Positions 1,313-64,000 of a stretch of DNA of 64,000 nucleotides are shown piece by piece. The translations under genes were made by a program, and so were the position numbers. Source of the DNA: Paragordius varius (taxonomy: Eukaryota; Animalia; Nematomorpha); NCBI GenBank assembly GCA_964247055.1, contig OZ176054.1, forward strand, positions 13,454,001 to 13,518,000, read 5' to 3'. Position 1 is the first letter of the stretch. Each line of letters begins with the position of its first letter. The notes beneath the pieces are model-generated. The model was not told where the DNA came from. It made no database searches and saw only the letters and a list, made by a program, of their open reading frames with translations.

Positions 1313-3693
1313 ATGTTTGAACAAAAACCACTCTTTGGGGGAACATCTTCCTTTATTTTCGGGCAACAAACTCAATCAACTCAAAATATATTTGGGACTT
1401 CAAGTTTATTAATTTATTTCCTATTATAAAAATATGTTTTTTTTCCATTATGCAGTATTACAAATCATAAAATAAATTACAAATAAATATTATTTAAAGA
1501 CAACTATTTTTCAATATTCCACCATTGTTTTGTGTTGAAAAGAAATAAGATGTAAATTAATTGTAATCATAAGTCAGCCGTGTTTAATACAAATAGCTTC
1601 GCGGGCCGCATCTCAAAAATATGTCGGCATCAACAAATATTTTATTAAATTCCAAGCGTAAGACTGTAAAATATTATTTATTTTAACAAACAATTTCTTG
1701 TCAAAATTTACAAGAATATTTAAAAAAATGTTCGAAGTGCCGCATGGAAAATGTGCTTCTTTCATCTTTTACGTTTATTTTCTTTTCTATATAGTTTTAT
1801 TCTTTTCTCGTTTTAGATCCAACTCAAGCTGTGGATCCTTTCGGACAACACCCGCAACCCTCGGCGACCCCTTCTCTGTTCGGTCAACAACCAACCAATC
1901 CTTCAACAAATTTGTTTCAACCTCAAACACCTGGTACATCGGCTTTCTGTAAGTTAAACTTTTTAGATAATTTTGTCATTTAGTTTTTGAAATCGAAATA
2001 TTCCCTTTTTTGTTTGATTAGCAACATTGATTTTTTTATATAGAAATCATATCTCTAATTATTTACTATACAATGTTTGGGTTGAAATATAAAAATGAAA
2101 ACTTGACACTATTTAGATTACATTTCTTTACTTATAAACCATCGGATATACAAAATTTCCGTTTAAATAGTTGATTATTTAATAAAAAAGGTATTATAAC
2201 CCTTTAAAAAATTACAATTTTAATCGTATTTTTTACACTTCCTATCCTTAGAGATGATATTTTCAATTTTATTAAAAATGAAATAATAAAATTTATCAAA
2301 ATATTTTTTTTAACTCCTTTAGCCTTTGGTCAAACTCAAAATGCACAAACTACGCCATCTTTCCTTGGCGGTGCATCCACCGGTGGTGGACTTTTTGGGA
2401 TGGCCACTGCCCCACAAACAGCTAGTAATATACTTTTATTTTTATTGGTTAAAATTGGTTATAACATGATTTTAATTAAATGGTTAATTTTAAAAAACGT
2501 TGTTTTTTTTCAGATAATTTTTAAAATTTTATTTGCGTACAATAATAACATATTTTTAAAAGGTTTTATTTGGATTCTACATTCATTTTTGGTTTTATGT
2601 TTCCTATTTTGCTATTTCTTATTTGTGAACATAGGGAGGGCATATACAAAATGATGGCTCTAATAAAAATAACTTTTCTTTAAACAAAAAAAAGTATATA
2701 GTATTTTTTGCTGCAATTTTAACATTTTCTTAATAGGTAGAATTTTATTTTAAATTATTTTTGTGAAAAAAAAACATTTTATTCAATTTAAGGCACAACG
2801 ATCAAGTTTAAAGCCCCAACTGCGCAAGATACAATGCATCGAAATGGAATTGACGAAAATGTTACTATTAAAATTCAATGCATTTCAGCCATGGAGGAAT
2901 ATAAAAATAAATCTCTTGAAGTATCAATTAATTAATTAATTAACTTTTAAAAACTTTGAAATTGTAAAAATTTTTGCAAAGTTTTCGAAAAGTATATTGT
3001 TAGTTTTTCAGTTTTAAGTTTTAGGTGTGCATTAGTTTAACTTATATATGAATTTTTTATTGTATTAAATTAATATTAAAGAATTGATATTTTTGGTTAT
3101 AACTTTAAGGTTTTCCAAACTTTTATTATTTAAAAGCTTTTTATATAAGCTTTTTTGATTTTTAAAATTTGAATATATTTTACTTATTTTTTACATGTTA
3201 GGAATTACGCCTAGAGGATTATATGGCGAATCCAAAGTCTTCAACAGTAACCGGTTTAGGGTTAGGTTCAACCCCTTTTCAGCTCGGTCAAACAGGTGAG
3301 TCAGCTGTTTTTTTTTCAAAATATAAATAGTTAACGCAAATTTATAAATATGTGTGGAAACTGATTATTTCCTGCATATTAGAACTAAAATATTTGTTTT
3401 CAAGCAATATTAACAAAACTTTTTTTGCGTCTTGAAATAACATTTTTTTACCGCTTGATTAATTAACTTTTTTTTTGATAATTTTTTGTGCTTTTATATT
3501 ATAATGTTTTATATAAATATGATAAGAGTATACTACATTTTAGAAAGTAATAGAAAGATGAAAAAGATTTTTAAGGTTGAAAAAAGTTTAAAGTTTCTTT
3601 TATTGGAATATAAAAGAAAATATGGAGGTTTTTTTTCATAAAAATTGGGTTTTTTTTGCATATCGATTAAAATATTTTTGCCTTTTAATTTTT

Positions 3694-3728
<35 letters not shown>

Positions 3729-3859
3729 ATATAGGTTCCTCACTGTTTGGTGGAACCCCACAAAGCAGCGCGACGACCAACCTTTTTGGGGTAAATTCTA
3801 ACCCCAGTATTTTTGGTACTTCCTCGTCCTCGTTTCTGGTTTTATTTTCAATTTTAAAT

Positions 3860-3892
<33 letters not shown>

Positions 3893-5286
3893 CATTAATG
3901 TATTTAAAAAATAAGCTATTGAATATATATAAGTTTAATGTCCAAATTAAGGAGTATTTTAAAATTATCTAATTTTTAAAATGTTTTTTAAAAAATTTTA
4001 GACTAGTACTACACCTTCGCTCTTTGGAGCTGCTCAGATATTTTTTTATTTTTGGAGAATTTCAATTTTTTTTTCGAATTAAAAAGCAATATATTTTTTT
4101 TCAATTTTTTAAGTTATATATATATTTTATATTTAAAATTATATGTTTTTATATTTCACATTTTTAAATTATATCCAAATTTCAGAAAATAATATTTTTT
4201 TTTATAATAATAATAATTAATATTTTAATTTTTATATTTAATTTAGCCTTTCGCAACGCCAAGCCTTTTCGGGCAACAAACGGTAATAATTTGAAAATAT
4301 AAATTATTTTATATTTACAAAAAATAAATTATTTTTTTTATAAAATATAAATTTTATTTTTTTTATTTTATTAAAAATTTAATTTTAAAAAAATAAATTA
4401 TTTTTTTTATAAAATATAAATTTTTTGGACAATTTTTTTAGTCACAACCAACAGCTGCTGCTACCCCATTTCAATTTGGAGCTCGGGCTCAAAAATTTGT
4501 GCAAGATGGAACACAATGCGGTACACAATACTACAACACATTGCAAAAACGACTAAGCACCAATTATGAAAAACTGCAAGGCACTGAAGGTTATCGATCT
4601 CTGCGACAATTTTTGAAGGATCGCCCGCTTGTGTCGTTTGTGAGCGCAACTGTTTTGCTATATACCTTTTTTACCCTCATAACATTCCTTAGCTTTGTGC
4701 TTGGATCGTTTTGTTTTACCCTGTTTGGATTCATTATGATTGAAGGTACATCTAATGCACAAAAAAAGTCTTCCAGTGTATTGCTTAAGAATTACTTTTT
4801 ATTTACAGCTGTATTTTAATAAAATATTTATACTAATCAGGTACGCTATTATCCATTGCAACCATCATCGCTTTTTCATCCATTACCATTTTGGCTTGGA
4901 TTGGTTTATTGGTCGCCGTTGGACTTTTATTGGCTTACACGGTTACATCACGTATCGTACACTTTTTTCGGGGTACTCTCATCCCTTGTGGCAAACAGCG
5001 AGCAAATTCAGCCTATTGCTTTTTTCGTTCCCACATACCCAAAACACTTTTTATGGATGAGACTGTTTCCAACGGTATTTCTGCCTGTAAATGCTGTCAA
5101 GCAGGCACGAATGCTGAGTCGATGTGTCACACATGCACAAAAACTCTTAATAATAGCCATCAAAGAGTTGTGGGTTTGGTTGAGTCAAATCATTCTCCTT
5201 ATCATTACGGTCCACGTAATGCTAAGGATAGTGATGATGACGACACTAAGCCCATCGATATGGCTAGTTACAGCAATACTAAATAA
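1313..5286 (+). CDS. Chimeric multi-exon gene: NUP98-type FG-repeat/GLEBS N-terminus fused in frame to an LDAF1/promethin membrane domain and a Cys-rich tail
   Basis: Phase-consistent exons: 1313-1403, 1817-1948, 2323-2424, 2793-2920, 3202-3295, 3735-3838 (or -3790), [4002-4037, donor reads AT instead of GT], 4247-4282, 4442-4745, 4841-5286 (TAA). The protein begins MFEQKPLFGGTSSFIFGQQ, passes many xLFG repeats and the GLEBS motif, then reads ...TPFQFGA-RAQKFVQ...LQKRLS...QFLKDRPLVSF...GFIMIEGTLLSIA...AYTVTSRIVHFF. Confidence 0.8.
2793..3295 (+). CDS. NUP98: GLEBS (Rae1/Gle2-binding) motif exons of the NUP98-like N-terminus
   Basis: Exons 2793-2920 and 3202-3295 encode TTIKFKAPTAQDTMHRNGIDENVTIKIQCISAMEEYKNKSLE|ELRLEDYMANPK. 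This matches the Nup98 GLEBS pattern TTIKF..P...DTM...QCI.AMKEY..KSLEELRLEDY and is flanked by FG-repeat exons. Confidence 0.93.
3700..3732. repeat. (TA)n microsatellite
   Basis: TA run directly before the acceptor at 3734; a second TA run lies at about 3866-3892. Confidence 0.9.
4484..4975 (+). CDS. LDAF1: LDAF1/promethin (TMEM159)-like lipid droplet assembly factor domain (3' part of the chimera)
   Basis: Spliced at 4745/4841 (GT-AG, with TACTAAT branch just before the AG). Collinear with human LDAF1 as recalled: LQKRLS/LQKKLS, QFLKDRP/QYLDSHP, GFIMIEG/GVIILEG, AYTVTSRIV/SYVVVSSLI, with a long uninterrupted hydrophobic double hairpin. Confidence 0.8.
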
Positions 5287-6974
5287 CAATAGTACCAATA
5301 GTAATACGTATTTTCGAAGGAATATCACATCCACGAATAATACGTATAATGGGCGCAATGTCCCATCTAATCACTATTATACATCCAGTCCGACAAATAC
5401 TGTCATCACTTTTTCGGTCAAGACGGAAAAATCATCGAGAGAGACCAACACGGGACTGCCTCCGACTTTGGGGGATTCTACGACCAATTTTTAAGCGTTT
5501 ATCCAATACCCCACAAATATGATGACATTGGATTGTGATGGTTTTTAAAACTAAAATTGCAAAATTACCACATTCATTTTGTCTTTTAATTATTTTAAAT
5601 GAAACGACTTTTATGTAGATTATAAAGTGGAAATTAGTATTATATAAATAGAAATGTACATATATATAATTTTTCGTTTTTATAAATTTACGCATATATA
5701 TTATTATCAACTCAAATCTGATTTATAGATAACTGGACTGTCATTACAATATGCGTGTGGTTATGGTAAACAAAGGTGTCTGTTGAAGGTCAAATAATAT
5801 TTTAAGCTTAACGTTATGTCCAAAGTTTGTAGATAATCAATTTATCAAAAGATAAGCACAGTTATGAACACATCTAAAGATTGTCCAAAAAAATGATGAA
5901 ACCAATTTATTTAAATAAGAAATATCAAATGATTATTTGTATTGTTTGGATATTTTTATTGTTGTGGATTATAACGGTTATGATTTAGTGTTTTGATGTT
6001 AAATTTTGGATATTTTTTGATATTGATAATCTGTTTGTTCGTAGCCATTATGTCTCGAAATAAATGAAGTATAAGTTCAATTTTGTTAACATTGAAACTT
6101 TTCTACTATTTATAAAGATGACCAGCTTCGCTACCGACAAAATTGGATTAAAATTTTAATCAAAACTTCATAAGGGTTCTACCCAGTGTAATACAAGTGC
6201 TTTAGTAATGCCACTATGACGAAAATGTTTAACATTATTGAATTCATATAATTTGATGATCAGTAATTCTGTTCTAAAAACGGTTTAAACTATATGATGG
6301 CATATTTTACAGAAGGTGGGGCCCTACACAATTAAGAGCATTGGCCGAAATTTAGTATTAATCAGAGATTTGGCTAACTGCATTATCAAATCTCTATGGT
6401 GTGATAAGTTATTAAATTTGCTTTAATGCTATTTTTATATGGTGGCGTATCGTACTAACGGAGAAACCTTAGCCAACACATGTTGGAATATAAATACGGG
6501 AAATATATAAATACTTCATGAAATCCATATGGCTACAAAAGTTTTGAAAGTTAATTTCATAACACGTTTTATGTATGGTGGCACATTTAGATTCACCACA
6601 TATTTTATAAGCTCTTAACTAATTTTTTATACTACGGGATACACCTAAAACCATTTTTGATTTTGTATAATCTCCTAACTTGAGCAAAAAATGGCTTCAG
6701 GCCACGTTACTTTTACCAGGCAACATATACAACCTTGTGTCGACCCCTACACACAGGTGTATGTAACAAATGGCCATATAACCTTTGTATAGGAAATAGC
6801 TATAACCCTGATTGAATCCTTATGATTCTTTATTTTCCGAAATACATAGAATATACAGTTTAGAGTCTCTTTTTACCTTTTTTATTTAAAATAAAGGACT
6901 TAATTGTATCTAGACTGTGAAAGCTTTAACACTCGCCTGCCTGCCCAGGGCTGACAGTGATGATGAAAAAATTG

Positions 6975-8568: not shown

Positions 8569-11500
8569 ATGATCGGATTGTATGTAGTTATAGGATGCGT
8601 AATTCTATGTGAAGCAGTAACCCTACCCACAGGTTATATTAACACATAAGATGAATAGTCATTTATTTAATAATTTTGAAAATATTTAAATAAAATTGTT
8701 TTTTATAATTTTATATTATTTTATTTTTGATTATATAACCGAAAAAATGGGATTTTTAGATAATTTTTAATTCAAAACATTTTTTGCCTGTAAAAGATCC
8801 AAAGTTAATATAGTGAAAATTGATACAGTAAAAACTGAAATTATACGGACAAAACGTAAAAATATAAAGACAAATATTTTTTTCTAAAAGACAACCAACC
8901 ATACTTTTATAAACCTTAATTTATCCTATAAAAAACATTTAATTGGATTCGTAAAATAGTCAATTCATTGTGTTTCCAATCGATATTTCTAAAAAAAATC
9001 AAGAATAAAAAAGTTTGGATCTCTTTTTGAAAAAATATTTGTCTTTATACTTTCACTTTTTGTCCGTATAATTTCAATTTTACTGTACAAATATATACTT
9101 AAAATTAAACCATTTAATCATACATCTATAATCTTACAGTAAAAATTGAAATTATACGGACAAAAAGTGAAAGTATAAATACAAATATTTGTTCAAAAAG
9201 ACACCCATACTTTTTTATCCTTGATTTTTTTTAGAAATATCAATTGGAAACAATGAATTGACACGAATCCAATTAGATGTTTTTTTATAGGATAAATTAA
9301 GGTTTATAAAAGTATGGTCGTCTTAAAAAAATATTTGTCTTTATTTTAACATTTCCGTATATTTCAAAATTTACTGAAAGTACAGCTATTTTATGATAAT
9401 TTTTGTCTTTATGTTTTTACGTTTTGTCTTTATAATTTCTATATTTTTTTCATTCAAATTTTTTAAGGGGAATTGTATGCCAAACACATTGGAGAACAGA
9501 AATGGTATATTTGTTTTAACCGGAGGAATGCTTCCTTAAATTATGAGCTTTTCATCAATTTTACCAACAATGGGACAGTCGCAAGCAAAAGACAAACTGT
9601 AATTTCCAACAAAAATATTTATAATCTTTACCAGGGGTGTCCAACACAAATGGCTTCGCGGGCCGAATTTGGAAAATATATGGATATTAACAAATATTTT
9701 TTTAGATATTAAACCTAAGACTGTATGTAATAAAAGTCACTATTTAAATTAACAATTTTACTCGTTCATTGCCAGAAAATACTTTCAAAAAATATTTTTT
9801 TCTTACATTCTGTGAAATTTATGCCGCGAATAGCTGAAATTTTTTTAAAGGCTGGGTGTTGTACACCCCTGATCTATACCAGCATTATATGTTAGACTAA
9901 ATATACACAGAAATGTAAAAATTAAACATATATTTTTTTACGAGCATTCACCTTTTTTTAATTTTCTTAATTCATGAAGTGATATTAATAAATTTGCCAA
10001 TTACATTTATTTCTTAATTTATGAGCCAAAACTATAGGTTTTAATTAAAAATTAAGGTTAAGTATGGTTGTTTTTATGAAAAAAACATTGTCTTTTAGTT
10101 TTTGCGTGTTGCCAGTAGAAATTCAATTATTAGAGTAAGTTTATAATTTCGTTGTTTATTTTATATGGTTTTTATAAAATTAAAATTAATTTTATAGTAC
10201 TTCTTTGTATTTTCAACAGTAAACACAGTAAAAGTTGAACGGATTAGGGCTTATTGTAACCAACTAATTTTTATAAATTATTTTACAATAAATTTTTTTG
10301 AATAAATAAAGCCCATTTTTGAAATGGCAATTATAAAGTGTCAAAATTTATTGTCTATTATCGAAAAATACAGACAACGTAAAAAAAATTTTTTATAAGA
10401 CAATGTTATTTTTTAACTTTGATATTTTCTACACAATCTACATAATTGAGTTGGGAAATGTAAAAATGTGAATGTTACCAATTTACATCACTAGTTCTTA
10501 TTTTGAAACCCAAACGATAGTTGATAAAAAAATATGGTTATCTTCGAAAAAAATATAAGTCCTTTATTTTTACGTTTTGCAGGTATAATCTCATTTTTTA
10601 CAATATATTTATATAATATGTCATAGAATCTTGTTGGAAACTGTTTTTATACCCAACTAAATACAAACTCCTCTGGTAATTATGTTGTCCGTATAAAAGT
10701 ATTCGAAAATGGGCTCACCAGAAATGATTTGCAATATCCAACCTTCTATTTACAATATGGTAAGACGAAACGGTCTGCTATGAATTTATTATATCTTAAA
10801 TGGAATTTATTTAAGCCCTTCAATATCTTTTGTAATCTATAATTTCATTTTAATCGATAGTATACGAAAATCACTTTTAAGCGGCTGAAAATTAATTTTA
10901 AATATTAGTGTTGATATTTTGGTAGGCTTGAATATGCTGCTTATAAACGTTATAAAACATAAATTTAAAAATTAACTTAAAAAAATTATATGCAAAGGTT
11001 GAATTTTATACATGAAGTGGACTCCAAAGTAATATCTATGGGAATTTTTTATAATTCAATTATATTTTAATATCTCTAAAAAATGAGATGTACGAATTAT
11101 ATCATAACTCCTTCCTAAACAGCTTTAATGGTATTAGCTGTGCAAATACAGTAAAAGTTAAAATTATACGGACAAATGTAAAAATACAGACAAATATTTT
11201 TTTCAAAAGACAACCCTGCTTTATAAAATTTTAAAATTTCCAATTATTTTAATCGAAAATGTATCTAATACAGATGTAAATAGGAAAACCTATTAATTCT
11301 AAATTTTACAGTGGTAGGGAAATATTTTAAATAAGTAATATTAATTTAAAAAAGTATAATTGACTTTTGAAAAAAATATTTGTCTTTATATTTTTACGTT
11401 TTGCCCGTATAATTTTAATTTTTACTGTAAACGCGGAGGAAAATTTAAAAATTTTGTTGATTTTAGCAAAATAAATTTTTCTTTTATAATTTCATATTCT

Positions 11501-20277: not shown

Positions 20278-21981
20278 CTAATAAATATATAGATTAATAA
20301 AATGTTTTATAGTATTTATCCATTTGATGCAAAAATTTGTAACACCGATTCTATATAACTGATTAAAGGTTAAATTGAAATAAAATGTTCCGTTTATATA
20401 AACATATTCCAACAGTTGAAGAAAAGACATGAGATTATATAGTAGGGATGTTGAAACATTTTTGACCACCAAAAATTCCCAAGTCATTTGGGCAATTGAG
20501 AGTGGTAACAAAAAACACACAAATTCCACTGATAAAATAATCATGGTTCTTATGTGTTCTTTGTTACGAAGCTCCTTTTTCCTCAGTAAACTTGAACGAC
20601 ACGGTATAATTTCATGAGTTGATAAATTTCGGGTATCAGGATTAGGGCTGATTTTGTTAACAGACCTAACATGCTCTATAGTGGGCCAAACCTTCGGGCT
20701 TCTTGAGAATTTTGTTTTATTTACAGAATTTGGGTTCAGATAAACCCCAAACGCATCATTTGTTTCACAATCCCCACCAATATTAGATGCATCAAAATAA
20801 ATTTCATTAGCTTGACAAGGTTTTGGTGTAAATTGTTGTTGTTGAGGATTGGAATGCTTTATATTATCGACAAATTTTATGAGCCAAAATTTGCATCCCA
20901 TAATTGTTAGGAAAGGCAAAATTCTCAAAAATACTTCGCGTATGATTTCATAAGCTATCGCTATGTAATACCATTTGGCATGGGGGTGTATTTTCCGCGT
21001 CCTGATAGCAAAAATATCAACGCCGTAATAATTAACAGTGGGTTTAGTTATGAATCGTGTTTTGGCCACATTTCTTCTAAGCTCTGGGGTCCATTGTATA
21101 CAAACTTTGAAAACTTCAAACCAATAGAAGACGGGTATGCAAAGCATACCACAGTAGAGAAATGTAAAAAGTAGGGCTATTCGCATTTTAGCTTTCGTTA
21201 TTAATGCCGTGTACATGAACGGTTTATAGATTGCAAAGAATTGATTCATAAAGTACAAAACAAAAATTCCATAACCAAAGTTAATCAGTGTTTTCGAGAT
21301 TATGAGGTGTATGTGAGCCAAATAAAAGTTCCAACCATATCGACCCCAGATATAATTTGTTATTGTGCTTGAATTTAATTTTATCAACGGTGAAGGGATC
21401 ATAAACAGGGTGCTCAGTAAATTTGTGCCATAAAACCATTGTAACAAATAATTGTTGAAGGAAAGTTTTTTGCCAGATTTTGAAGCTTTCGGTGCATTGG
21501 GTTCAAAAATGGACGCTGTAAGATTAGAAAAACTCCAATCCGTTCCAGTATTTGAGGAAGTTACAAGTGTAATTTTTCGATTATCGATTTGGTTTCGCCC
21601 CAAATAATTCTTACCTTTGCTTCGTTTGTGGGGAACTACTGTTGTACCATGTGATTGTGACACAATTTTAATCGATTTCAACAATGGTTCCTGAACGGCA
21701 AAAGCCAATCCAATCCCATTCCCCAGTAAACCAAGAATGAATAAAAGTATACTCATAGTTTTATTAATGCAATGCATCCACGTATCCGGGTATAAATTTA
21801 TTGTATCGTATGAAACACAATGGTAATAACTTGGTCGTTCTCTTACCATTAAAGTCGTCTGTGTTTGCAAATCGTATGCCGAGCTAATATTTGTAATTTC
21901 CATCGCTGACAAGTTGACAAATTTTGATGTTAACGTTAAATTTATTGGGTTGTGGGCAAATTCCATTATATGATTAATCAT
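20278..21981 (-). CDS. Intronless divergent rhodopsin-class (class A) GPCR, peptide/FMRFamide/srw-like orphan receptor, 567 aa
   Basis: Longest ORF in the window, with seven hydrophobic segments: TM1 ILGLLGNG (GN motif); TM3 ending NQFFAIYKPF (DRY replaced by NQF, then A-x-x-x-P); TM5 LRILPF; TM6 FVCFLLP; TM7 followed by NQLYR (helix 8). N-terminal N-glycosylation sites. Confidence 0.85.
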   Translation of the reverse strand: MINHIMEFAHNPINLTLTSKFVNLSAMEITNISSAYDLQTQTTLMVRERPSYYHCVSYDTINLYPDTWMHCINKTMSILLFILGLLGNGIGLAFAVQEPLLKSIKIVSQSHGTTVVPHKRSKGKNYLGRNQIDNRKITLVTSSNTGTDWSFSNLTASIFEPNAPKASKSGKKLSFNNYLLQWFYGTNLLSTLFMIPSPLIKLNSSTITNYIWGRYGWNFYLAHIHLIISKTLINFGYGIFVLYFMNQFFAIYKPFMYTALITKAKMRIALLFTFLYCGMLCIPVFYWFEVFKVCIQWTPELRRNVAKTRFITKPTVNYYGVDIFAIRTRKIHPHAKWYYIAIAYEIIREVFLRILPFLTIMGCKFWLIKFVDNIKHSNPQQQQFTPKPCQANEIYFDASNIGGDCETNDAFGVYLNPNSVNKTKFSRSPKVWPTIEHVRSVNKISPNPDTRNLSTHEIIPCRSSLLRKKELRNKEHIRTMIILSVEFVCFLLPLSIAQMTWEFLVVKNVSTSLLYNLMSFLQLLEYVYINGTFYFNLTFNQLYRIGVTNFCIKWINTIKHFINLYIY

Positions 21982-28697: not shown

Positions 28698-29274
28698 CTC
28701 GCTTTTGTGTTGATGTTAAATCTGGTAGTTTTCCTTTTTGGTGAATGAACCTTAAGAGACGACAAGATTTTTCAGGATCCTTGGAATTTTCATTACATAT
28801 ATAATTATTTAAAGTATGATTGGTAGATTTGAAAGTATTAAAGCATTTAATATCAAATATTTGGTTTGGTATTTGTTTCCTGTCTTTGACATTGGTAAGA
28901 CAAACTTGTTTATATAGATATTTATTCTCAAAATGATGTTTTTGGTTAACATAATTGTTGGTTGTAGGTAGATTGTATATGGATTGATTAAATAATTTAT
29001 TTGATTTATTTTGTAGCAAAATTGATTTTTTGATTTTATATTTTTTTCTGTAAGGATTAATATCATCAGATTTTAACGCATATGTTCCCGTCTTTTTCCG
29101 TTTAGAAACTGTTTGAGAAATTTTTCTGAAAAAACGATCCCTGACCTCTTTGTAAGCCAAAAAGGCCAAAATAATGATGAGTGTAGTGGCAAGAAAAACC
29201 GCTATGCGTAATCCTTTCATGGGGTTATAACTTCTAAAAAAATTTAACCATAAACAGTATAAAATTAACCACAT
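28698..29274 (-). CDS. Probable first exon of a type II membrane (signal-anchor) protein of unknown function
   Basis: 200-codon ORF in about 75% AT DNA, with MKGLRIAVFLATTLIIILAFLAY followed by a basic stem region. A donor G|GTATAT at 28697 is phase-compatible with an acceptor near 27903 (EVSLPNPDIC...). No family recognised. Confidence 0.5.
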
Positions 29275-30899: not shown

Positions 30900-31650
30900 T
30901 TGGAAAAATTATAAATTGTGGTTTCGTGTGAATGAGTTTTGGGCGCTATGGAAGACAGTACAACTACAAAGATGATTAAGTCCAAGAATTTTTGGATAAT
31001 CCCAAAACTCATTATTGGCAAAAATAACATCGATTACAAATATCAATCATTAGACGTCTCCGAGAAATGGGATATGCCAATAAACTCAGTAAATGGGGCC
31101 AATACAATTTAAATGAACGTCAAATCAAAAATCGTAAAAACGTCACAAGAAGTCATTAAATCGAATTGGGACGGGTGTTGAGAAAGTCCTTTATTATGTA
31201 AATCAAAAGGGGAAAAATCGTGGCATGCATGCCAAGTTCCACAATAAAGCCAAATGGCTTCGACAAAACATTACACTTTCTGTTTGATGGGTCCAAAGCG
31301 GTATTAACAACTTTTGACCAAATTGTTTATAACCAACATGCTAACAACTAACCATGCATTAATCAAAAAAAATCGGAAAAAGCTAGAAAACATGACAAAG
31401 TGGTTTGGCAAGATGACACTATGTCTCACACAGCAAACAATAAAAGTTACTTTAAAATCGATGTGAAATTTCCCACCGTTGAATATTTATAAAATGACCC
31501 CATCTATCAATACAACTATGCATGGGACACAGTCTCGTAGAACAGCATTTCAAATGACTTGAATGGTTGGCCGCAAAAGTCAATCAGTTTTTGCACGGGA
31601 TTCATATATTAACCGAGAGATAAGCAAAATCAACTTTTAATATCAGAATG
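30900..31650 (+). pseudogene. Decayed mariner (DD34D-type) transposase
   Basis: Across stops and frameshifts: IIRRLREMGYANKLSKWGQYNL (WVPHEL-like), NRIGTGVEKVLYYVN (IVTGDEKW-like), TLSV*WVQSGI (MLTVWW-like) and VVWQDDTMSHTA (LLHDNARPH-like). Confidence 0.7.
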
Positions 31651-32074
31651 TTATTAGCCTCTACTAGATTGTATCTTAATTCTGTGCCCCATATAGGGAA
31701 TATTTTAAAAGAGTTATTTGAAAACGCGTCCTTTTGGCACAACTTAAGATAGATTATTGTGGGTGGATTTAAAATTATGTTTTTTGAATTAGAGAAAAAT
31801 AACCCGTTGCCCATTGAAATAATAATTACAGGTTTTCGAAAATTACTAACTACAATTTTATAATTTTAACACTGATGATCATATGATGATCCCAGAAATT
31901 TTGAGGCTTTACTATGTTGAGAGATTCATATAGATATACAAATTCAGGTGGACCTCCAATTATGGATAACTGGTTCAAGGCTTTGATTTATTGTAGGCTG
32001 ATAGCATAATTTAGTAAGCTAAACCCAGTTTAATACAAATAACCAATCACAATCGGCATAAAAAATAGCCAAGT

Positions 32075-33141: not shown

Positions 33142-36100
33142 CTACTGAGATATTTCATTCATAATGTTTCGATATTTCAATTGTGTTCGATGCATATCAA
33201 GAAAAATCTCATATTTTGCCGCATAAAAAGCAGTTAGATGGGAATAAGGTCGTAAAATTTGGCCATCACATTTCATTCGGTCCATCATATCCTATCAATT
33301 AAAAAAAAAAACTTAAAATTTAAATTAAAAAATTTCAAATAAAATTTTAAATTTATCCAAAAAACTTGTTCTTACAAAAACTTTGAGTGGACTGGATTGT
33401 GGCAAACAATTTTTTTCGTAAGTATAGGCACCCATTAAAGCAATACCCAGCATTACACAATGCTCTTGATTGGCGGGTAGTATGACAATTTTACCTTTAA
33501 AATGTGACAAGTTTATGGTTAAATTACAATAAAAACTGAAATTATATGGACAAAATGTAAAAATATAAAGGCAAATATTTTTTCTAAAAGACAACCAACT
33601 ATTTATATTTTAAATTTTATTTCAATATAACTCATTGTTTTAAATGGCAGTGAAACAGAGATAAATATTACTAACACAATCAATTCTATTAACAATTGTA
33701 ACTAAATAGCTTATATGAAAAAAATTAAAGTATAAAAAAGTATGGTTGTCGTTTAGATAAAAATAATTGCCTTTATTTTTTCATGTTTTGTCCGTATAAT
33801 TTCAATTTTTACTGTATAAAAATAGTGTATATAGCAAACTTCTTTTAGTGTAGTATACGCGATATCACAAAAATGTAAAAAATTTATTTATCAATAAGGA
33901 TAATTTCAAACAAAAAAAGTTAAAATATGCCCACAAAAAAGTTTCTCAAAAAATATTTGACTGTTAAAAGAAATTACCAGTAACATCGGCAACTATTTGA
34001 GCAAACAAAGTATTATGACATAATCCACCGCCAATATGGATCACATCAATCTTATATCCACCTTCCGTAATAAGTTTGCTTATTATGAGCCTAATATATT
34101 TTTTATAAATAAAAGGAAAAGATTTTTATAGAATATACAGTAAAAATTATAGAGACAAAACGTAAAGACGAATATTTTTTATCAAAAGACAACCAAACTT
34201 TTTTAACCTTAATTTTTACTATGTAAATTATTTAACTAGAATTGTAAATATATAAATGATTGTGTTACCAATTTACATATTTATTTTAATACTTTGCAAT
34301 AAAACAATGAGTTTACAAAAAAATCACAAGTTTAAAAAAGTATTGTGGTGGTCTTTTGAAAATAAACTTTGTGTCTTTATGTTTAACATTGGTTATAATT
34401 ATTTTTTTTCTTAATATATGTTAGAAATAATTCAAAATTAATATATATATGGATATAAATTAATACCTAACACCCATAGCTAAAGCTTGCATAAGTGCAA
34501 TGTATAAGGCAACCATAGAACTTGTAGTCAAGACATCCATTCCAATAATCTAAAGAAAATGTTAAATTCTCTTTTCTTGGGTAAAAATTTAAATCTGTTA
34601 ATACCTATTAAAATGATTATATTATAATATAATCAATTGGTTTTCTTTATGACCTTCGGACTCCAAATTAGGCATTTATATAAATTAGTCGCTTAGATTT
34701 TCGAAAATATTATTTACCATTTACAATTCAAATTCGCCCTTAAAAAATTCAAAACCCTAAAATAAAAGATTAAATATTTCTTATATTTTTTTTATACTTT
34801 TAAAAAATGAAATTTTGTTTAAAATATAAATAATACTGAAAAAATGATAAACTATGCCATAAAGATATATTTCATATTAATAACACTAGTCGACAAATTT
34901 GGACATTTTTAAACACCACCACTCAAACTTTTTAAATTATGACTAATTTCAGTGTTTTAAAACCGAATTTGAAAAAAAAATTGATCCCGCCAATCAGAAT
35001 TTTGAAATTTTATAGGTTTTTCAATTTTTCAAAAACAAGTGAAAATCGAGAGATAATTAAATATAACTTATAATAAAATGTTATTATATTATAAACTTAA
35101 TATCATTTAATAAAGCGTTTTAAACTCTATCTTTTGAATATAAATATGTCATTTAAATATCAGAGAGAAAAAAATAGTACGGACTTAAACGTCAAAATTT
35201 AGTCTTTTTCTTTCAAGTGAATTTTTAATACGTATAAAAATTTTTTAAAAAAAACTAAAAAAGGCATTCTATGGTTTAAACCTTCGGCTTTTAGATAGGC
35301 TATATTTTTTTTGTTAGTTTTCGTCCTTTAGAGTACTTATTAGGCTTTTTTTCTTGAGTTGGTTCTTACAAAAAATCCTTTATTTATACCTAGTGGATAT
35401 GCTTTATTTTTTAAAATTATTGGTTGTTTTGTATTTTTAATTTCAGATGGATGTTGTGTAACCACTTTTAGTAGAATTTACTATTATGGGATTGGACCAT
35501 TTGTATTTACGTAATCTTTTTATTCAATTTAATTGTAGAATTTATCTAACTTTATTCTGTGAATTGGTTAATTTGACATGTCAATTTGCCTGGATTTTGC
35601 TTGCAAGTCTCTCTTATCGGGCTTTACGATTACTTATTGTTATCTTTGCCATATCTGGCATAATTGGATCGCTTGGGGGATATGCAGAGCTTGTGCAGCC
35701 GCCCGGATCTATCACACTATACTAAGCCCTTTTAATTTTTAATACTTTGGCTCTTAGCATGTTTAGTATCTTATTTAATGCCTAGAATTTGTTATCCATG
35801 CATGAAAAATTACTTGTATCGACTTGCTTGTTTGAATATTTAAACATATGTACACGAGGAATGATTGCTATTTTTGAATTAAATACAAATTTAAAAATTA
35901 AATTTTGGAAAAATCCTATTGGTGGCCTCAATTTTCTTTTTTGTTTTGGCCTTTCCATGCCATTAGGTATCAGAAAATGCAAAAATAATGGGGTGGTGCA
36001 AAACCTTGTTGAGCAGTGTAATATTTCGGAAACATAATATATTTTTAGGGTGATTTTGAATTGTTCAAGATTGAATTTGAATTGCGAAGGCGAGTTTGAA

Positions 36101-42300: not shown

Positions 42301-44042
42301 TTGTTTAAAATGTAAAATATGAGAAATATATATTCACTTGTCTTTTAGAAAAAAATATTTGTCTCTATATTTTTACATTTTGTCCGTATAATTTTAGTTT
42401 TTATTGTATATGTACAAAATGTATTTTTTGGTTAAAAATTTTCTTCCTTGTTGTAAATTAATAAATTCTGTTCTATATATCTATCGATTTTAAAAAACAA
42501 TTTTTGCTCTTGTTTCTATATCATTAAGTTTAGGCAAAATTTTAAATAATTATCGGTCTACTGCTTTATTAAAAATTTGTTAACATATGATATCAAACAT
42601 AAATTACATATTTTTATATGTGCAGATTTTAAGTAAATTTTATATGAGAGAATGGGTTTTTTAATATATTTGCGTCTAAAAACTTGAAAAATGTATTTTA
42701 TCGAGTCATTAAATATACATAAATAAGGGTATGAAACTCTTTTAACGCGGAAAAAAACGATTATAGATGCGTCATGGTTATCGATTATCAGATTTTTATT
42801 TAGTTACAGATTATTTGATTGTAAATATTTAGATTAGCGGTAAGACCGGTTAGAATATGCGAGTTAATTAATCCAACTCTAGATAGATATTATAAATAAG
42901 GGTAGGGGGTTATATATTGGAAAGATGTATCAATAAAAAAGCATACCTAGTTAAAATGCCTGTGGCTTTATAACGCATAAAATCGGCAAGATCCATCATC
43001 ATTCCAATATCTTTCCATTTGATTAAATTCTAATAGACATTCAAAACAAAGTTGCATAATTACCGTAAAATTACAGTAAAAAATGAAATTATTTTAAAAA
43101 ATTCCAATATTTTTAAACCTTGATTTTTAGAAAAAAATATATAAATAGTTTTGAATCGACAAGGAAAATAAGTTGCTTAAACACGAAATTATATGAGTAA
43201 GTAAATATTGCTAGAAAGTTATTAATTATTGCCAAATAGCATAGAATATGCAACAAAGAGAATTATTGGCTAATAATAGTAAAAAGTGAAAAAAATAACT
43301 ATAAGCCAATAATACTGCCCCCTTTATTGTATATGCTATTTGGCTATATATAATAACTTTCTTAGCAATATCTACTGACTCATACTATTTAACAAATACT
43401 GTTTTAACGTTGTTTTATCTGTATAACATCAAACTCCACTGTATTAAAATTGTGATAAAAGCATAAAAACATTTAATAATTATTTTTTCCACTAGAAAAA
43501 ATATAAATCCTACAAATATTTGGAAAGGATACGCGTTTTAGCCAAAGCAACTTGGGAATTTGCATTTCCAAAGAAATTTTGCCCCCTAAAGAGCGCAAGA
43601 CTTCATCATTGCAACAAACAGAATTTATGTAATAAGCTTCCTGATCAGCTCTATGATCCATCCACATGATTATATTATATATTTCTTCATCAGTGTTCAG
43701 GCTGTTGATTTGATTGAAAGCATTTATAGGATTAGATTGGTGATCTAAAATTACTAATGAGCAGGTAGACGCAAATGAAATTGATTTTATACAATTGGAA
43801 TTTACATTCTGTAACATCTCCTAGATTTCAAAAGTATTGAGGAAATAATGTACTTTAAAGGCATCAATAAAGGACAACCATATATTATCGGATGATTGCA
43901 TATAGATATTAGAATTTGGGCTAAATATCTTGAGTGGCCTTACTGTTTTATAAATCAATTGGCCATAAAAATCAAAAACACCAATCCTTATGCTGCCTGA
44001 TCCAACATCAACTCCAATATGATAATCTAACAAGGGATTCAT
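33142..44042 (-). CDS. FGGY: FGGY carbohydrate kinase domain-containing protein (D-ribulokinase-like)
   Basis: Phase-consistent exons: 44042-43854, 43820-43533, 43029-42947, 41677-41619, 41524-41483, [41135-41033 or 40668-40581], 39024-38858, 38292-38197, 37561-37301, 36783-36704, 34549-34467, 34090-33978, 33494-33376, 33291-33142 (TAG). Motifs: IGVDVGSGSIR, ASTCSLV, IIMWMDHRA, SLEMQIPKLLWLK, DLADF, SVCKW, MIDAHAG, MTGTSNC, GIWGPY, HEGGQ, IWPDFTGNRSP, GGGLCHN, LGIALMG. Confidence 0.95.
33527..33814. mobile_element. MITE family A (in FGGY intron)
   Basis: TA-flanked TIRs; another copy lies at about 34138-34400 in the next intron. Confidence 0.88.
34717..36110. mobile_element. Foldback MITE family B split by a nested element
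   Basis: The left arm and body (34717-34880) match 12840-13060, and the right arm (36030-36110) matches 13100-13220. Confidence 0.75.
34884..36018. mobile_element. CACT-ended element with TAA target duplication (diverged relative of family D), carrying a coding-like block
   Basis: TAA|CACTAGTCGACAAATTT...CCTTGTTGAGCAGTG|TAA. The right subterminal TATCAGAAAAT.CAAAAA motif is shared with 24770-24826. Confidence 0.7.
37035..37345. repeat. About 164-bp tandem duplication covering a FGGY exon end and donor
   Basis: AAAAGTGAAA...AGTTCATAAACAGCGCAAAAC...GGTAGAAATTGTTTGATAATC occurs twice. Confidence 0.85.
37787..38077. mobile_element. MITE family A (in FGGY intron)
   Basis: Full inverted arms. 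Confidence 0.88.
38491..38749. mobile_element. Foldback MITE family B
   Basis: Short arms of 21-bp units; ends TGTAAATGG|TATA. Confidence 0.8.
39102..40510. mobile_element. MITE family A split by (TA)n and by family D copy 2
   Basis: Left half at 39102-39270, TA run at about 39268-39300, right half resumes at about 40440. Confidence 0.7.
39317..40423. mobile_element. Family D element, copy 2 (inverted relative to copy 1)
   Basis: TTA|CACTGGACAACAAATTTT...AAATTTGTTGTCTAGTG|TTA; reverse complement of 23706-24826 along its length. Confidence 0.9.
40581..40668 (-). CDS. FGGY: FGGY alternative exon 6B (88 nt, phase 1 to 2)
   Basis: TTTTATAG|GA TTG CCT GAA...ACT TTT AC|GTATGA encodes LPELSERNALHFGQKPYFLDGVEGPLTFT. 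Confidence 0.75.
41033..41135 (-). CDS. FGGY: FGGY alternative exon 6A (103 nt, phase 1 to 2)
   Basis: TTTTATAG|GA TTG CCG GAA...ACT TTT AC|GTATGA encodes LPEFSKRNDGENHGLNFGQKPYFLDGVEGPLTFT. Confidence 0.75.
41802..42158. mobile_element. Foldback MITE family B
   Basis: CCATTTACAGTTCAAATTCACCC...GAATTGTAAATGG|TATA; the two arms have unequal numbers of 21-bp units. Confidence 0.88.
42195..42406. mobile_element. MITE family A (internally deleted)
   Basis: TA-flanked arms with a shortened body. Confidence 0.8.
43191..43387. mobile_element. MITE family C
   Basis: TIR ATGAGTAAGT...TTGCTAGAAAGTTATTAATTATTGCCAAA; homolog at 50474-50660. Confidence 0.75.
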
Positions 44043-44794
44043 TAAATTTCCAAGTCAAAAATTGAATTTAAATAACCCATATGTGACAATGACAATAAAT
44101 AAATTTCGATGGTGAGTGTAATAATTAATTTTGAGGTAAATATTTACCCTATAATATTTAAGCCAAGAATTAATTGAGTATAGACAAAACGTAAAATTAT
44201 ATATATACATAGATACATTCGAAAATTTTATATTTTTTCATACGATGGGTTCCAGAGTTGAAAATTGGGATAGCTTTATAAAATTTGATGTTAAGAGTGA
44301 GTCAGAATATTTGCATATATGATTTTAAGAAAATGTTTCCAAAAGTTTGTGTGTTAAGTCTTTTAAGAAAATCAATCACCCCAGTATAAATTTAACCAAA
44401 TCTACTAATATTAAAAGTAGGATGGTTTCACCTTGAATTACAAGCTTCCGCAGGCTCCAAAATACTTTAATTGTCAAACTTTTTTAAAATGCGTTAGTTT
44501 TCTTAAAAATGATAAATTTGGGGAATATGAGGTGATTTTATTAAAATAATCAATTAAAAAATGTTCGCATAGCGTGAAGTGCAATGACATATTTCATAAT
44601 GGAAACCATAAAACACGCTATTGCATTTTTTCAAATTAATATATTTCGATTGAAAATATTTATTACCTTAGATTTGTGAAAAGATTTTGGCTTCTTTCTA
44701 GAATATCATAATCATGAAAATCAAGACATAAACCTAACTAATATTTTAAACTAAATTTTGGACAGATCACTTTAGCGGCAGAAAAATATTTATA

Positions 44795-51934: not shown

Positions 51935-53771
51935 TTATTCTTTGGTATATTTTTTGTTTGAGTGAATGCGTTTTAGCGGATTGTCATTTTAAAAATATTA
52001 TAGAAGTCTTCACAAGAATGTGTCTAATTATATTTGACAGATAAAATTCCCTTTAAAGTTTCAACAAAATAAATTTGATTTTTCCGATGTCCACACATAT
52101 ACTGTGGAAAAAACGCGCTCAGTAGCAGCGTGGGTTCCAGGTAAAGATAGTGCGAATTCCATAATTTTAATATTATTAATGTAATTATAGTTGGCTTCAA
52201 AATGATAAAATATTTCCAACCATTTCTTTTCTACTGTATATTTTTCTTTTGTCCATAATTTAAGTTTTTCATTATTAATATATCTTTTAACTAATGATTC
52301 TTCAGGAAAAAGATCATTTTCTGAAAGATTTTTTGAGAATTTTTGGGATCAGATATAATCAAATGATTTTTGAACATCGCACCAATTTGTTTTTATTGTT
52401 ATCCAAAGAAAATGATTAATTTTATTGAATTGCGTCGTCCAGTCTTCCAAATAATTTCTACAGTTTGTATAAAATATTTTTATATGGTACAGGATATCTT
52501 GGCGATTTATTAAGCCTTGTTTTTCTAAATTATTTATTATATTACGGATGGTTAATGGTATAAAATTATTTTCTAACCGTTCTTGACATTGGAATTTTAG
52601 GTTACTAACTTCATTGTCTACTTCGATTGCCGAAATTTTGTCACCTTCTATAAATTTAATAACATGAAAGAGAGAAGCTTGATTATGTAAGAATTCTAAC
52701 CATATTTTTGAAGAATCACTTTTAAAAAACTTTTTTAAAGTTGTAGGACATTTGTCCTGTGATAAAAAAATGATTTTAAAGGATCATACATTTTTAAAAT
52801 TCTTTCGATAGCTGGCATAAAAGCTAACCAACGAGTTTTACAATATCCAAGCATTTTTTGATATTGAACTTCTGCATTTTCACAGAATTCTTTAAGCGTT
52901 TCAACACGTACCGTTTATATATAAAAATAGGAATATATTTTAACAACTACATTTTCCACATCTAGGGGTAACAAATCAGCAGCTGTTTGAATATCATTGT
53001 GTATTATATGCGCTGCACACCCAACGCCAATGTCTTGATTAAGATTTTCTGCTAATTTATATTTTTTGTTCCCCTCCTTGCTTTTCCACCGAAGTTCGTA
53101 TTGGTGTTGTCAGCGCAATATGCGATAATTTTGTCTTTTAAATTATTTTTTTATAGAATATGCATTACTGAAGTAAATATTATTTCGGAATTTTCACCGG
53201 GTAAAGAAATTAAATCTAAAATTTTAATTTTAACTCCGGTTTCTGAACAAAATATCTTATTAAAGTGGGAAATAATTTTGTTTCATGGTGATTTGATGAT
53301 CAGAGTATAGGGATAAGAAATTAATTTTCAGCAAATCTTTTTGTATTTCTGAAAATGCATATGATGAAAGGACATTGCACACAATGGCTTCAGCCTTTGT
53401 ACGGGCACATGTAAAATTTTTATGGAATAAGGTACGAATAACCTGTGAGGTACAATCCATAGATCTAAAGGATTGATTGTGATTAACGGCGTGAAAAGAT
53501 AAAACACCTTCGGCTAGTGCCAAATTCTTTTCTTCCTCTCCAAAAGCGGTTTTTCGAAAAAAATCGCTCATTTTGTAGGATGATGCCGCCATATCTAAAC
53601 ATTTTATATGTTGTGTTTCCACATGCTTTGTAATATCATGCTTGCCGCCATGTGCTAGAGTGAATTGCCCCTCGCATATAAGACATTTAATTGATTCATT
53701 CTTCGTTTTTTTGATAAAAGAAAATTCTTTATTATTCCATCGTTGAATTTACAACCTCTTTTTGTGCTCAT
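51935..53771 (-). pseudogene. hAT transposase pseudogene (frameshifts and stops)
   Basis: BED-like CLIC...HGG.HDI..H finger, AEGVLSFHAVNHNQSFRSMDC, FTCARTKAEAIVCNVL, YCADNTNTNFGG, GCAAHIIHN, KTRWL, and the C-terminal dimerisation motif LSLPGTHAATERVFS. Confidence 0.9.
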
Positions 53772-54715: not shown

Positions 54716-57700
54716 ATGTTTTGATGCAACTGTCTTTATGGATTATCGTATATTCAGTTTACATCCATCCGTCACCGAAACCACCCCTTTTCAGTATTAG
54801 GATAGATGGAGTTAGGAATGTTGGACAACTGATTTTGATGTAACTGTGTTAATGGATTATCGGTTATTGAGTTTACATCCATCTGTCACCGAAACCACCC
54901 CTTTTCAGTATTAGGATAGATGGAGTTAAGAATGTTGGACAACTGATTTTGATGTAACTGTGTTAATGGATTATCGGTTATTGAGTTTACATCCATCTGT
55001 CACCGAAATCACCCCTTTTCAGTATTAGGATAGATGGAGTTAGGAATGTTGGACAACTGATTTTGATGTAACTGTGTTAATGGATTATCGTATATCCAGT
55101 TTACATCCATCCGTCACTGAAACCACCCCTTTTCAGTATTAGGATAGATGGAGTTAGGAATGTTGGACAACTGATTTTGATGTAACTGTGTTAATGGATT
55201 ATCATATATTAAGTTTACATCCATCCGTCACTGAAACCACCCCTTTTCAGTATTAGGATAGATGGAGTTAGGAATGTTGGACAACTGATTTTGATGTAAC
55301 TGTGTTAATGGATTATCGTATATTAAGTTTACATCCATCCGTCACCAAAACCACCCCTTAGTATTAAGATAGATGGAGTTAGGAATGTTGGACAACTGAT
55401 TTTGATGTAACTGCGTTAATGGATTATCGGTTATTGAGTTTACATCCATCCGTCACCGAAACCACCCCTTTTCAGTATTAGGATAGATGGAGTTAAGAAT
55501 GTTGGACAACTGATTTTGATGTAACTGTGTTAATGGATTATCGGTTATTGAGTTTACATCCATCCGTCACCGAAACCACCCCATTTCAGTATTAGAATAG
55601 ATGGAGTTAGGAATGTTGGACAACTGATTTTGATGTTACTGTGTTAATGGATTATCGGTTATTGAGTTTACATCCATCCGTCACCGAAACCACCCCTTTT
55701 CAGTATTAGGATAGATGGAGTTAAGAATGTTGGAATACTGATTTTGATGTAACTGTGTTAATGGATTATCGTATATAGAGTTTACATCCATCCGTCACCG
55801 AAATCACCCCTTTTCAGTATTAGGATAGATGGAGTTAAGAATGTTGGACAACTGATTTTGATGTAACTGTGTTAATGGATTATCGGTTATTGAGTTTACA
55901 TCCATCCGTCACCGAAATCACCCCTTTTCAGTATTAGGATAGATGGAGTTAAGAATGTTGGACAACTGATTTTGATGTAACTGTGTTAATGGATTATCGG
56001 TTATTGAGTTTACATCCATCCGTCACCAAAACCACCCCTTTTCAGTATTAGGATAGATGGAGTTAAGAATGTTGGACAACTGATTTTGATGTAACTGTGT
56101 TAATGGATTATCGGTTATTGAGTTTACATCCATCCGTCACCGAAAACACCCCTTTTCAGTATTAGGATAGATGGAGTTAGGAATGTTGGACAACTGATTT
56201 TGATGTAACTGTGTTAATGGATTATCGGTTATTGAGTTTACATCCATCCGCCACCGAAACCACCCCTTTTCAGTATTAGGATAGATGGAGTTAAGAATGT
56301 TGGACAACTGATTTTGATGTAACTGTGTTAATGGATTATCGGTTATTGAGTTTACATCCATCCGTCACCGAAACCACCCCTTTTCAGTATTAGGATAGAT
56401 GGAGTTAAGAATGTTGGACAACTGATTTTGATGTAACTGTGTTAATGGATTATCGGTTATTGAGTTTACATCCATCCGTCACCGAAACCACCCCTTTTCA
56501 GTATTAGGATAGATGGAGTTAAGAATGTTGGACAACTGATTTTGATGTAACTGTGTTAATGGATTATCGGTTATTGAGTTTACATCCATCCGTCACCGAA
56601 ACCACCCCTTTTCAGTATTAGGATAGATGGAGTTAAGAATGTTGGACAACTGATTTTGATGTAACTGTGTTAATGGATTATCGGTTATTGAGTTTACATC
56701 CATCTGTCACCGAAACCACCCCTTTTCAGTATTAGGATAGATGGAGTTAAGAATGTTGGAGAACTGATTTTGATGTAACTGTGTTAATGGATTATCGGTT
56801 ATTGAGTTTACATCCATCCGTCACCGAAACCACCCCTTTTCAGTATTAGGATAGATGGAGTTAAGAATGTTGGACAACTGATTTTGATGTAACTGTGTTA
56901 ATGGATTATCGGTTATTGAGTTTACATCCATCCGTCACCGAAACCACCCCTTTTCAGTATTAGGATAGATGGAGTTAAGAATGTTGGACAACTGATTTTG
57001 ATGTAACTGTGTTAATGGATTATCGGTTATTGAGTTTACATCCATCCGTCACCGAAACCACCCCTTTTCAGTATTAGGATAGATGGAGTTAAGAATGTTG
57101 GACAACTGATTTTGATGTAACTGTGTTAATGGATTATCGGTTATTGAGTTTACATCCATCCGTCACCGAAACAACCCCTTTTCAGTATTAGGATAGATGG
57201 AGTTAAGAATGTTGGACAACTGATTTTGATGTAACTGTGTTAATGGATTATCGGTTATTGAGTTTACATCCATCTGTCACCGAAACCACCCCTTTTCAGT
57301 ATTAGGATAGATGGAGTTAAGAATGTTGGACAACTGATTTTGATGTAACTGTGTTAATGGATTATCGGTTATTGAGTTTACATCCATCTGTCACCGAAAT
57401 CACCCCTTTTCAGTATTAGGATAGATGGAGTTAGGAATGTTGGACAACTGATTTTGATGTAACTGTGTTAATGGATTATCGTATATCCAGTTTACATCCA
57501 TCCGTCACTGAAACCACCCCTTTTCAGTATTAGGATAGATGGAGTTAGGAATGTTGGACAACTGATTTTGATGTAACTGTGTTAATGGATTATCATATAT
57601 TAAGTTTACATCCATCCGTCACTGAAACCACCCCTTTTCAGTATTAGGATAGATGGAGTTAGGAATGTTGGACAACTGATTTTGATGTAACTGTGTTAAT

Positions 57701-63700: not shown

Positions 63701-64000
63701 ACAACTGATTTTGATGTAACTGTGTTAATGGATTATCGGTTATTGAGTTTACATCCATCTGTCACCGAAACCACCCCTTTTCAGTATTAGGATAGATGGA
63801 GTTAAGAATGTTGGACAACTGATTTTGATGTAACTGTGTTAATGGATTATCGTATATAGAGTTTACATCCATCCGTCACCGAAATCACCCCTTTTCAGTA
63901 TTAGGATAGATGGAGTTAAGAATGTTGGACAACTGATTTTGATGTAACTGTGTTAATGGATTATCGGTTATTGAGTTTACATCCATCCGTCACCGAAAAC
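54716..64000. repeat. 114-bp satellite DNA array (about 81 units, continues past the window)
   Basis: Unit GATGTAACTGTGTTAATGGATTATCGGTTATTGAGTTTACATCCATCCGTCACCGAAACCACCCCTTTTCAGTATTAGGATAGATGGAGTTAAGAATGTTGGACAACTGATTTT. The period is 114 bp (CCACCC at 54781 and 54895), units are highly similar, and the first unit is the most diverged. Confidence 0.98.

Follow-up and report, generated by a model that had tools for sequence, protein, structure and literature searches.

In a 64,000-nucleotide stretch of contig OZ176054.1 (the window), positions 1313 to 5286 of the plus strand probably hold a genuine chimeric protein-coding gene, in which a Nup98-type domain of phenylalanine-glycine (FG) repeats with its GLEBS motif and the membrane domain of promethin, also known as LDAF1, would be read as one open reading frame (ORF). 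Joining exons E1 to E6 and E8 to E10 in a reconstruction based on three-frame translation gave 1437 nt, that is, 478 codons followed by TAA. The initial annotation of this DNA had proposed such a single ORF, and it is borne out at the level of the exons: profile searches run on them scored 49.1 bits for Pfam Nup98_GLEBS (PF21240) and 35.9 bits for Pfam Promethin (PF16015), both against a cut-off of 27, and the nine exons are in phase.

The exon structure is visible in the base composition. The window is AT-rich eukaryotic DNA with a GC content of 23-32% over most of its length, and ten short GC-richer islands lie on the plus strand within 1313-5286. Nine of these are preceded by AG and have GT after them, their phases match on joining, and all introns are GT-AG. 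In the spliced reconstruction the exons have a GC content of 35-56% versus 4-24% for the introns, and between 1251 and 4441 all GC islands fall within E1-E8 save three short intronic ones. The ATG of E1 is the first after an in-frame stop at 1223-1225. The features of the locus are as follows.

1313 to 1403, plus strand: E1, MFEQKPLFGG..., three FG motifs; ends in phase 1 with the donor CAA/GTTTAT.
1817 to 1948, plus strand: E2, FG repeats DPFGQ and SLFGQ; phase 1 to 1; GC 49% versus 20-24% in the flanking introns.
2323 to 2424, plus strand: E3, FG repeats including GLFG; phase 1 to 1; GC 52%.
2793 to 2920, plus strand: E4, first part of GLEBS, TTIKF...QCISAMEEYKNKSLE; ends in phase 0; matches Pfam PF21240 and PDB 3mmy_B.
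3202 to 3295, plus strand: E5, second part of GLEBS, ELRLEDY..., with an FG-like stretch after it; ends in phase 1.
3735 to 3838, plus strand: E6, FG repeats SLFGG, NLFGV and SIFGT; ends in phase 0.
4002 to 4079, plus strand: E7, exon-like, with a GC island at 4002-4037 (TSTTPSLFGAAQ); outside the spliced model.
4247 to 4282, plus strand: E8, a 36-nt FG micro-exon (PFATPSLFGQQT); phase 0 to 0; GC 56%; AG before it and GTAATA after it.
4283 to 4441, plus strand: junction intron, 159 nt, GC 4.4%, with a 69-nt tandem duplication.
4442 to 4745, plus strand: E9, SQPTAAATPFQFGA, followed by the N-terminal region of promethin with the first of its hydrophobic hairpins; leaves off in phase 1 at IEG.
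4841 to 5286, plus strand: E10, second hydrophobic hairpin, polar tail and TAA.
5285 to 5494, plus strand: putative coding continuation in the +1 frame, 69 codons, ending in ...TTNF and a stop.

The introns flanking E8 have GC contents of 13% and 4%, and E6 has an alternative in-phase donor after position 3790 (GTAAAT). Two microsatellites, (AT)18 at 3697-3733 and (TA)15 at 3862-3892, flank E6, the upstream one adjoining its acceptor. An ATG-bearing stretch of intron 1 (1621-1657) that fits the phase of E2 was discarded as an exon since it is part of a repeat recurring at 9603-9749; the fragment of this repeat in intron 1, at 1597-1683, resembles the copy found there. A search around the locus for inverted or direct repeats of the kind expected from transposon capture returned AT-rich low-complexity sequence only.

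Residues 1-241 of the predicted protein carry 12 FG motifs (PLFG, IFG, SLFG, GLFG and others). The FG parts outside GLEBS, 179 amino acids in length, contain 21 phenylalanines, 23 glycines and three charged residues, and this predicted composition is that of a Nup98-type FG domain. On single exons the Pfam Nucleoporin_FG profile stayed below its cut-off, with a weak match in E2. GLEBS is encoded by E4 and E5: E4 aligned over its full length with the human Nup98 peptide bound to Rae1 (PDB 3mmy_B, residues 160-201, E=8.7e-11), GLEBS also aligned to 7byf_B and 4owr_B with E values of about 1e-10, and E5 gave a weak, contiguous alignment to residues 202-225 of Nup98-96, with the EE pair retained at the E4/E5 junction. 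GLEBS occupies residues 110-165 here versus 160-225 in human Nup98. A comparison of E1 alone with the PDB was uninformative, and comparing E7 with E8 revealed no recognisable duplication between them.

The Peptidase S59/HFS autoproteolytic domain is absent from the 478-codon ORF. The claim that neither this domain nor Nup96 follows downstream also stood up to a wider search: 39 GC-richer stop-free plus-strand segments between 5.3 and 20 kb gave no Pfam match to either, within the sensitivity that single-exon fragments allow, and in a motif scan of the window in all six frames neither an HFSKY-type site nor another FG cluster turned up.

E9 opens with SQPTAAATPFQFGA and continues stop-free into the Promethin domain, the Pfam match covering E9 residues 37-101 and profile positions 2-66 of 106. 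E10 alone did not match the Promethin profile. Residues 291-372 form a continuous hydrophobic block on the Kyte-Doolittle scale, with breaks at two places, IEG and a turn containing W/G; by hydropathy these are the two hydrophobic hairpins that define LDAF1/promethin, with a predicted topology. The putative LDAF1-like amphipathic helix described in the initial annotation has a hydrophobic moment of 0.43-0.49, a value that is only modest. A phmmer search with E9 of 1.84 billion representative proteins, with no length limit, retrieved one true homolog, from the nematomorph Gordionus, and two further hits (P0001 and P0003) were rejected as repetitive false positives. Canonical animal LDAF1 missed the threshold of E=0.001 in this search, and similar fusions in distant taxa could escape it. 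E10 found no homolog in protein collections, and the PDB holds no relative of LDAF1.

The promethin reading frame depends on exons upstream of it. E9 begins at a phase-0 acceptor, right after TAG, and, as had been described, it has neither a stop nor an in-frame ATG before the membrane segment: its first in-frame ATG is codon 98, within that segment, and the one at 4505 lies in another frame. Because the promethin half is conserved and has no usable ATG of its own, it needs a coding exon further 5' with a phase-0 end. The nearest phase-compatible donor is that of E8 at 4282, which itself has no other in-frame partner nearby, and we infer that the E8-E9 splice is used. Since the promethin domain would be untranslatable without upstream coding exons, the fusion appears to be fixed in the DNA and not to be an optional read-through. 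This agrees with the DNA-level fusion proposed earlier, although the argument then given for it, a junction inside the exon at about 4483, is not supported, as the ungapped tblastn alignment to Gordionus already starts at 4469 (the F of FQFG), being weak before about 4590. Given this alignment start and the fact that the homologous Gordionus exon is also internal, the boundary of the parental genes may instead be the 159-nt intron 4283-4441, brought about by exon shuffling, which would be the simplest reading; a hybrid exon E9 is possible.

The homolog is the uncharacterised protein LOC135922822 of Gordionus sp. m RMFG-2023 (P0004, XP_065313378.1), with isoforms of 203-486 amino acids. In the 486-residue isoform Promethin is found at residues 302-395 with 56.1 bits (profile positions 12-105), and the match of E9 to the Gordionus homolog P0002 had E=3e-10. 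The window and Gordionus are 37% identical over E9 and 47% identical over 58-59 residues at the start of E10, with conservation extending over about 150 residues of the promethin half, and an intron lies at IEG/TLLS at the same position and in the same phase in the window and in Gordionus. This conservation and the common intron position argue that the promethin half is translated. When the promethin region of the 486-residue protein was searched against proteins of 267-850 amino acids, only the Gordionus cluster was returned.

The Gordionus locus (L001, 43 kb, GC 28.6%) comes from a genome with a GC content of 26.9% and a metazoan BUSCO score of 71.6%; heavy gene loss has been reported for nematomorphs. 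Its first exon lies at L001 10001-10609, 21 kb 5' of the promethin exon, and an alternative first exon near 29108-29206, 2.4 kb upstream of it. The exon homologous to E9 spans 31599-32066 and that homologous to E10 starts at about 33030. The Gordionus promethin exon is internal, starts 62 codons earlier at a phase-1 acceptor and has a different 5' coding sequence, with an in-frame ATG (...NGMSHSS...) 5' of the domain, so that a stand-alone product is possible there, unlike in the window. The encoded protein has a long disordered N-terminal extension rich in serine, asparagine and proline. The Gordionus gene is likewise composed of upstream exons plus two promethin exons, in agreement with a fused gene in the window. 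No FG/GLEBS coding sequence was detected in the 43-kb Gordionus locus, including the 31 kb upstream of the promethin exon, and blastn found no similarity between the window and this locus; the window would thus come from a different, probably related, lineage.

Several points weigh against a fused gene. The same fusion is missing from the Gordionus locus, and the predicted junction is thus without comparative support; nor were the window's own proteins present in protein collections, as judged by three queries. Just 1312 nt of the window lie upstream of E1 while the Gordionus first exon sits 21 kb upstream of its promethin exon, and a distant first exon of the promethin gene may therefore lie beyond the window edge. 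Phase agreement at the single E8/E9 junction would arise by chance in 1 of 3 cases. Finally, the lack of a donor in E7 and the apparent C-terminal frameshift may be signs of decay.

E7 has a good acceptor and no GT donor, with the frame open to a stop at 4080, and its omission from the splice leaves the frame intact. It may be dead, or it may serve as an alternative last exon from which a soluble FG/GLEBS isoform is made. At the 3' end of the gene, past the TAA at 5284-5286, the +1 frame runs for 69 stop-free codons over a GC island, a stretch that was stop-free in 1.4% of shuffles, and its end, TTNF, equals the C-terminal TTNF of the Gordionus protein P0004. BLASTP between the C-terminal tails of the window and Gordionus was not significant. 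A 1-nt indel in the A-run at 5281-5283 is the probable cause, either as an assembly error or as a real C-terminal truncation. A small intron in E10 leading into the +1 frame was tried and rejected, since its donor at 5215/5216 gives the wrong phase with both nearby acceptors.

The best surviving alternative, which we regard as unlikely, divides the locus into two units. The first exon or exons of the promethin gene would lie to the left of the window, and a truncated Nup98-like gene, E1 to E7 or E8, would be nested in its intron on the same strand, ending either at the E7 stop at 4080, with ATTAAA nearby, or by read-through of E8 into VII and a stop, with AATAAA about 30 nt further on. Such an arrangement would be in keeping with the Gordionus first exons, 21 kb and 2.4 kb upstream of the promethin exon, with the possible use of the donorless E7 as a terminal exon, and with the mere 4.4 kb that the window offers 5' of E9. 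It would, however, require the skipping of seven well-defined in-phase exons, and nothing resembling the Gordionus 5' exons was found in the window. Moreover, the well-kept micro-exon E8 has a donor, for which a gene terminating at E7 would have no use, and an E1-started transcript that uses E8 would by default still splice to 4442.

More doubtful still is a young or decaying chimeric duplicate with no maintained function. Here a segmental copy of the Nup98-96 5' end, placed beside or inside a promethin copy, would be drifting toward a pseudogene, its exons, introns and splice sites inherited from the parents and not selected. The E7 donor, lost or never present, fits this, as does the stop at 5284, which resembles a 1-nt frameshift that removed a conserved-looking C-terminal end, and so does an FG domain much shorter than that of canonical Nup98, as seen from the position of GLEBS. 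The state of the coding sequence speaks the other way: the eight FG/GLEBS exons and both promethin exons are stop-free, all splice sites are preserved against a background of 26% GC in the genome and 4-24% GC in neutral sequence, and GLEBS keeps all the residues shared with the human Rae1-bound peptide, while the frameshift lies in an A-run and may itself be an assembly error.

It is very improbable that unrelated loci were joined by the assembly in the low-complexity AT stretch 4283-4441. That intron is 96% A+T with a 69-nt tandem duplication, and the possible homopolymer error at 5281-5283 hints at an imperfect consensus, but a chance join is unlikely to set a phase-0 donor 159 nt before the phase-0 acceptor of an exon that needs one, and neither composition nor repeat content changes across the join. 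We give the least credence of all to an operon-like arrangement, in which the FG/GLEBS gene would end by polyadenylation behind E8 and the promethin gene would receive a trans-spliced leader at 4442. About 100 nt separate the AATAAA that follows E8 from the 4442 acceptor, a spacing similar to that of nematode operons. On the other hand, the first AUGs 3' of 4442 lie in other frames and the promethin frame has none before codon 98, so that the leader would have to donate the start codon; an Rfam scan of the window returned no match, spliced-leader RNA included; a literature search combining Nematomorpha with nucleoporin or trans-splicing yielded nothing relevant; and the Gordionus homolog is annotated as cis-spliced. 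A complete Nup98-96 gene with promethin nested in one of its introns finds no support, as the autoproteolytic domain, Nup96, an HFSKY-type site and a further FG cluster were all missing from the segments and the window scanned for them. What comes after the locus is a minus-strand ORF, with other genes on that strand.

Other features of the window lie away from the locus. An intronless ORF of 567 amino acids on the minus strand (20278-21981) contains several hydrophobic stretches; it matched no Pfam family, and no homolog was found in a collection of 5.8 billion proteins. Also on the minus strand, 43824-44054 gave a sub-threshold match to Pfam FGGY_N and 33967-34125 looks FGGY-like by eye only; a long carbohydrate-kinase gene on that strand is a guess. 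A weak zinc-finger match was seen at 52352-53748 (minus strand), possibly a transposase-like ORF. Many short ORF fragments recur across the window (for example KNICLYIFTFCPYNF...), which points to dense dispersed repeats. A satellite with a 114-bp unit occupies 54719-63998 and reaches the window end (81.5 copies, 96% identity, GC 37%, strong GC and AT skew).

The predicted protein shares features with several known systems. Like Nup98 and Nup98-96 and the yeast proteins Nup116, Nup100 and Nup145N, it starts with MF..K..FGG and has charge-poor xLFG and xIFG repeats, and as in Nup98 its GLEBS is embedded in the FG domain with more FG repeats after it. Vertebrate Nup98 has an FG domain of roughly 450 amino acids; that of the window gene is shorter, at about 180. 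Unlike Nup98, the window gene lacks the Peptidase S59 domain, the linker and Nup96, and its C-terminus is a membrane domain. This domain resembles LDAF1/promethin (TMEM159, PF16015) in having two hydrophobic hairpins, the short polar turn IEG and a short polar N-terminal region before them. Canonical LDAF1 stands alone, with about 160 amino acids and its own start, whereas the window gene has no separate promethin start, about 240 Nup98-derived amino acids in front and a polar tail of 100-170 amino acids behind. The Gordionus homolog is similar in its internal promethin exon and long disordered N-terminal arm, and possibly in its C-terminus (TTNF), but its arm has neither FG repeats nor GLEBS.

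Two further precedents concern the FG half. NUP98 fusions in leukaemia keep the N-terminal FG-GLEBS-FG part and swap the C-terminus; they are somatic, and their partners are mostly chromatin and transcription proteins. POM121, a membrane-anchored FG nucleoporin, crosses the membrane once, through an N-terminal anchor, and lacks both GLEBS and a hairpin domain. The window gene has the same N-terminal part as the former and is, like the latter, predicted to be a membrane-anchored FG protein. It differs from the oncogenic fusions in that its partner is a membrane protein, and from POM121 in having both GLEBS and a hairpin domain. For the promethin half the closest parallel is yeast Ldo45, in which an upstream gene is spliced onto LDO16, a promethin-like anchor, and the disordered part serves in organelle tethering (PMC5748981). 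Ldo45 thus also joins a promethin-type anchor to a long disordered N-terminal arm. Unlike in the window gene, the short yeast form Ldo16 has its own start, the fusion is optional, and the upstream partner is unrelated to nucleoporins.

The topology, partners and function of the fusion product can at this point only be inferred from the sequence. We propose that a promethin/LDAF1-like gene had its 5' end replaced by the promoter-proximal part of Nup98, taken from the gene itself or from a copy. The Nup98 part would supply the start codon, a charge-poor FG domain, a Rae1-binding GLEBS and a short second FG stretch, and transcripts from 1313 would splice the E8 donor at 4282 to the acceptor at 4442. 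The product would be about 480 residues long, a length that would rise to about 545 should the terminal frameshift prove an artefact, and a short soluble isoform ending within 4002-4079 may be made in addition. In LDAF1-type hairpins both protein ends are in the cytosol. The C-terminal hairpins would accordingly sit in the endoplasmic reticulum (ER), outer nuclear or lipid-droplet membrane, and with both ends cytosolic, as in LDAF1, the disordered N-terminal FG/GLEBS arm would face the cytosol, where Rae1, transport receptors, other cohesive FG domains or the FG meshwork of the pore could be its binding partners. This would be a membrane anchor with a disordered tether, following the same logic as Ldo45/Ldo16.

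That this fusion is expressed and maintained as a membrane-embedded cohesive FG domain, with a working Rae1 site and an anchor in the ER, nuclear envelope or lipid droplet, is a tentative proposal, possible rather than probable. Two roles are conceivable: a Nup98 function anchored at the pore membrane without the autoproteolytic domain, in a lineage that by its one relative appears to belong to the gene-poor nematomorphs, or the tethering of seipin/lipid-droplet sites to nuclear pores or transport factors. A literature search found no co-mention of Nup98 with LDAF1, and the only co-mention of Nup98 with promethin was unrelated. No second natural Nup98-promethin fusion was found in searches with the promethin half, whose reach was limited to proteins closely related to this divergent one.

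Should the model prove wrong, the Nup98-like part would be no more than an intron-nested gene fragment. Given a fused mRNA, the gene would be a natural germline counterpart of the leukaemia fusions that retain the NUP98 N-terminus, joined here to a membrane hairpin protein. It would provide a natural test of a cohesive FG domain and Rae1 site fixed to a membrane and, after yeast Ldo45, would be a second independent case of a promethin-type anchor gaining a disordered tethering arm from a neighbouring gene.

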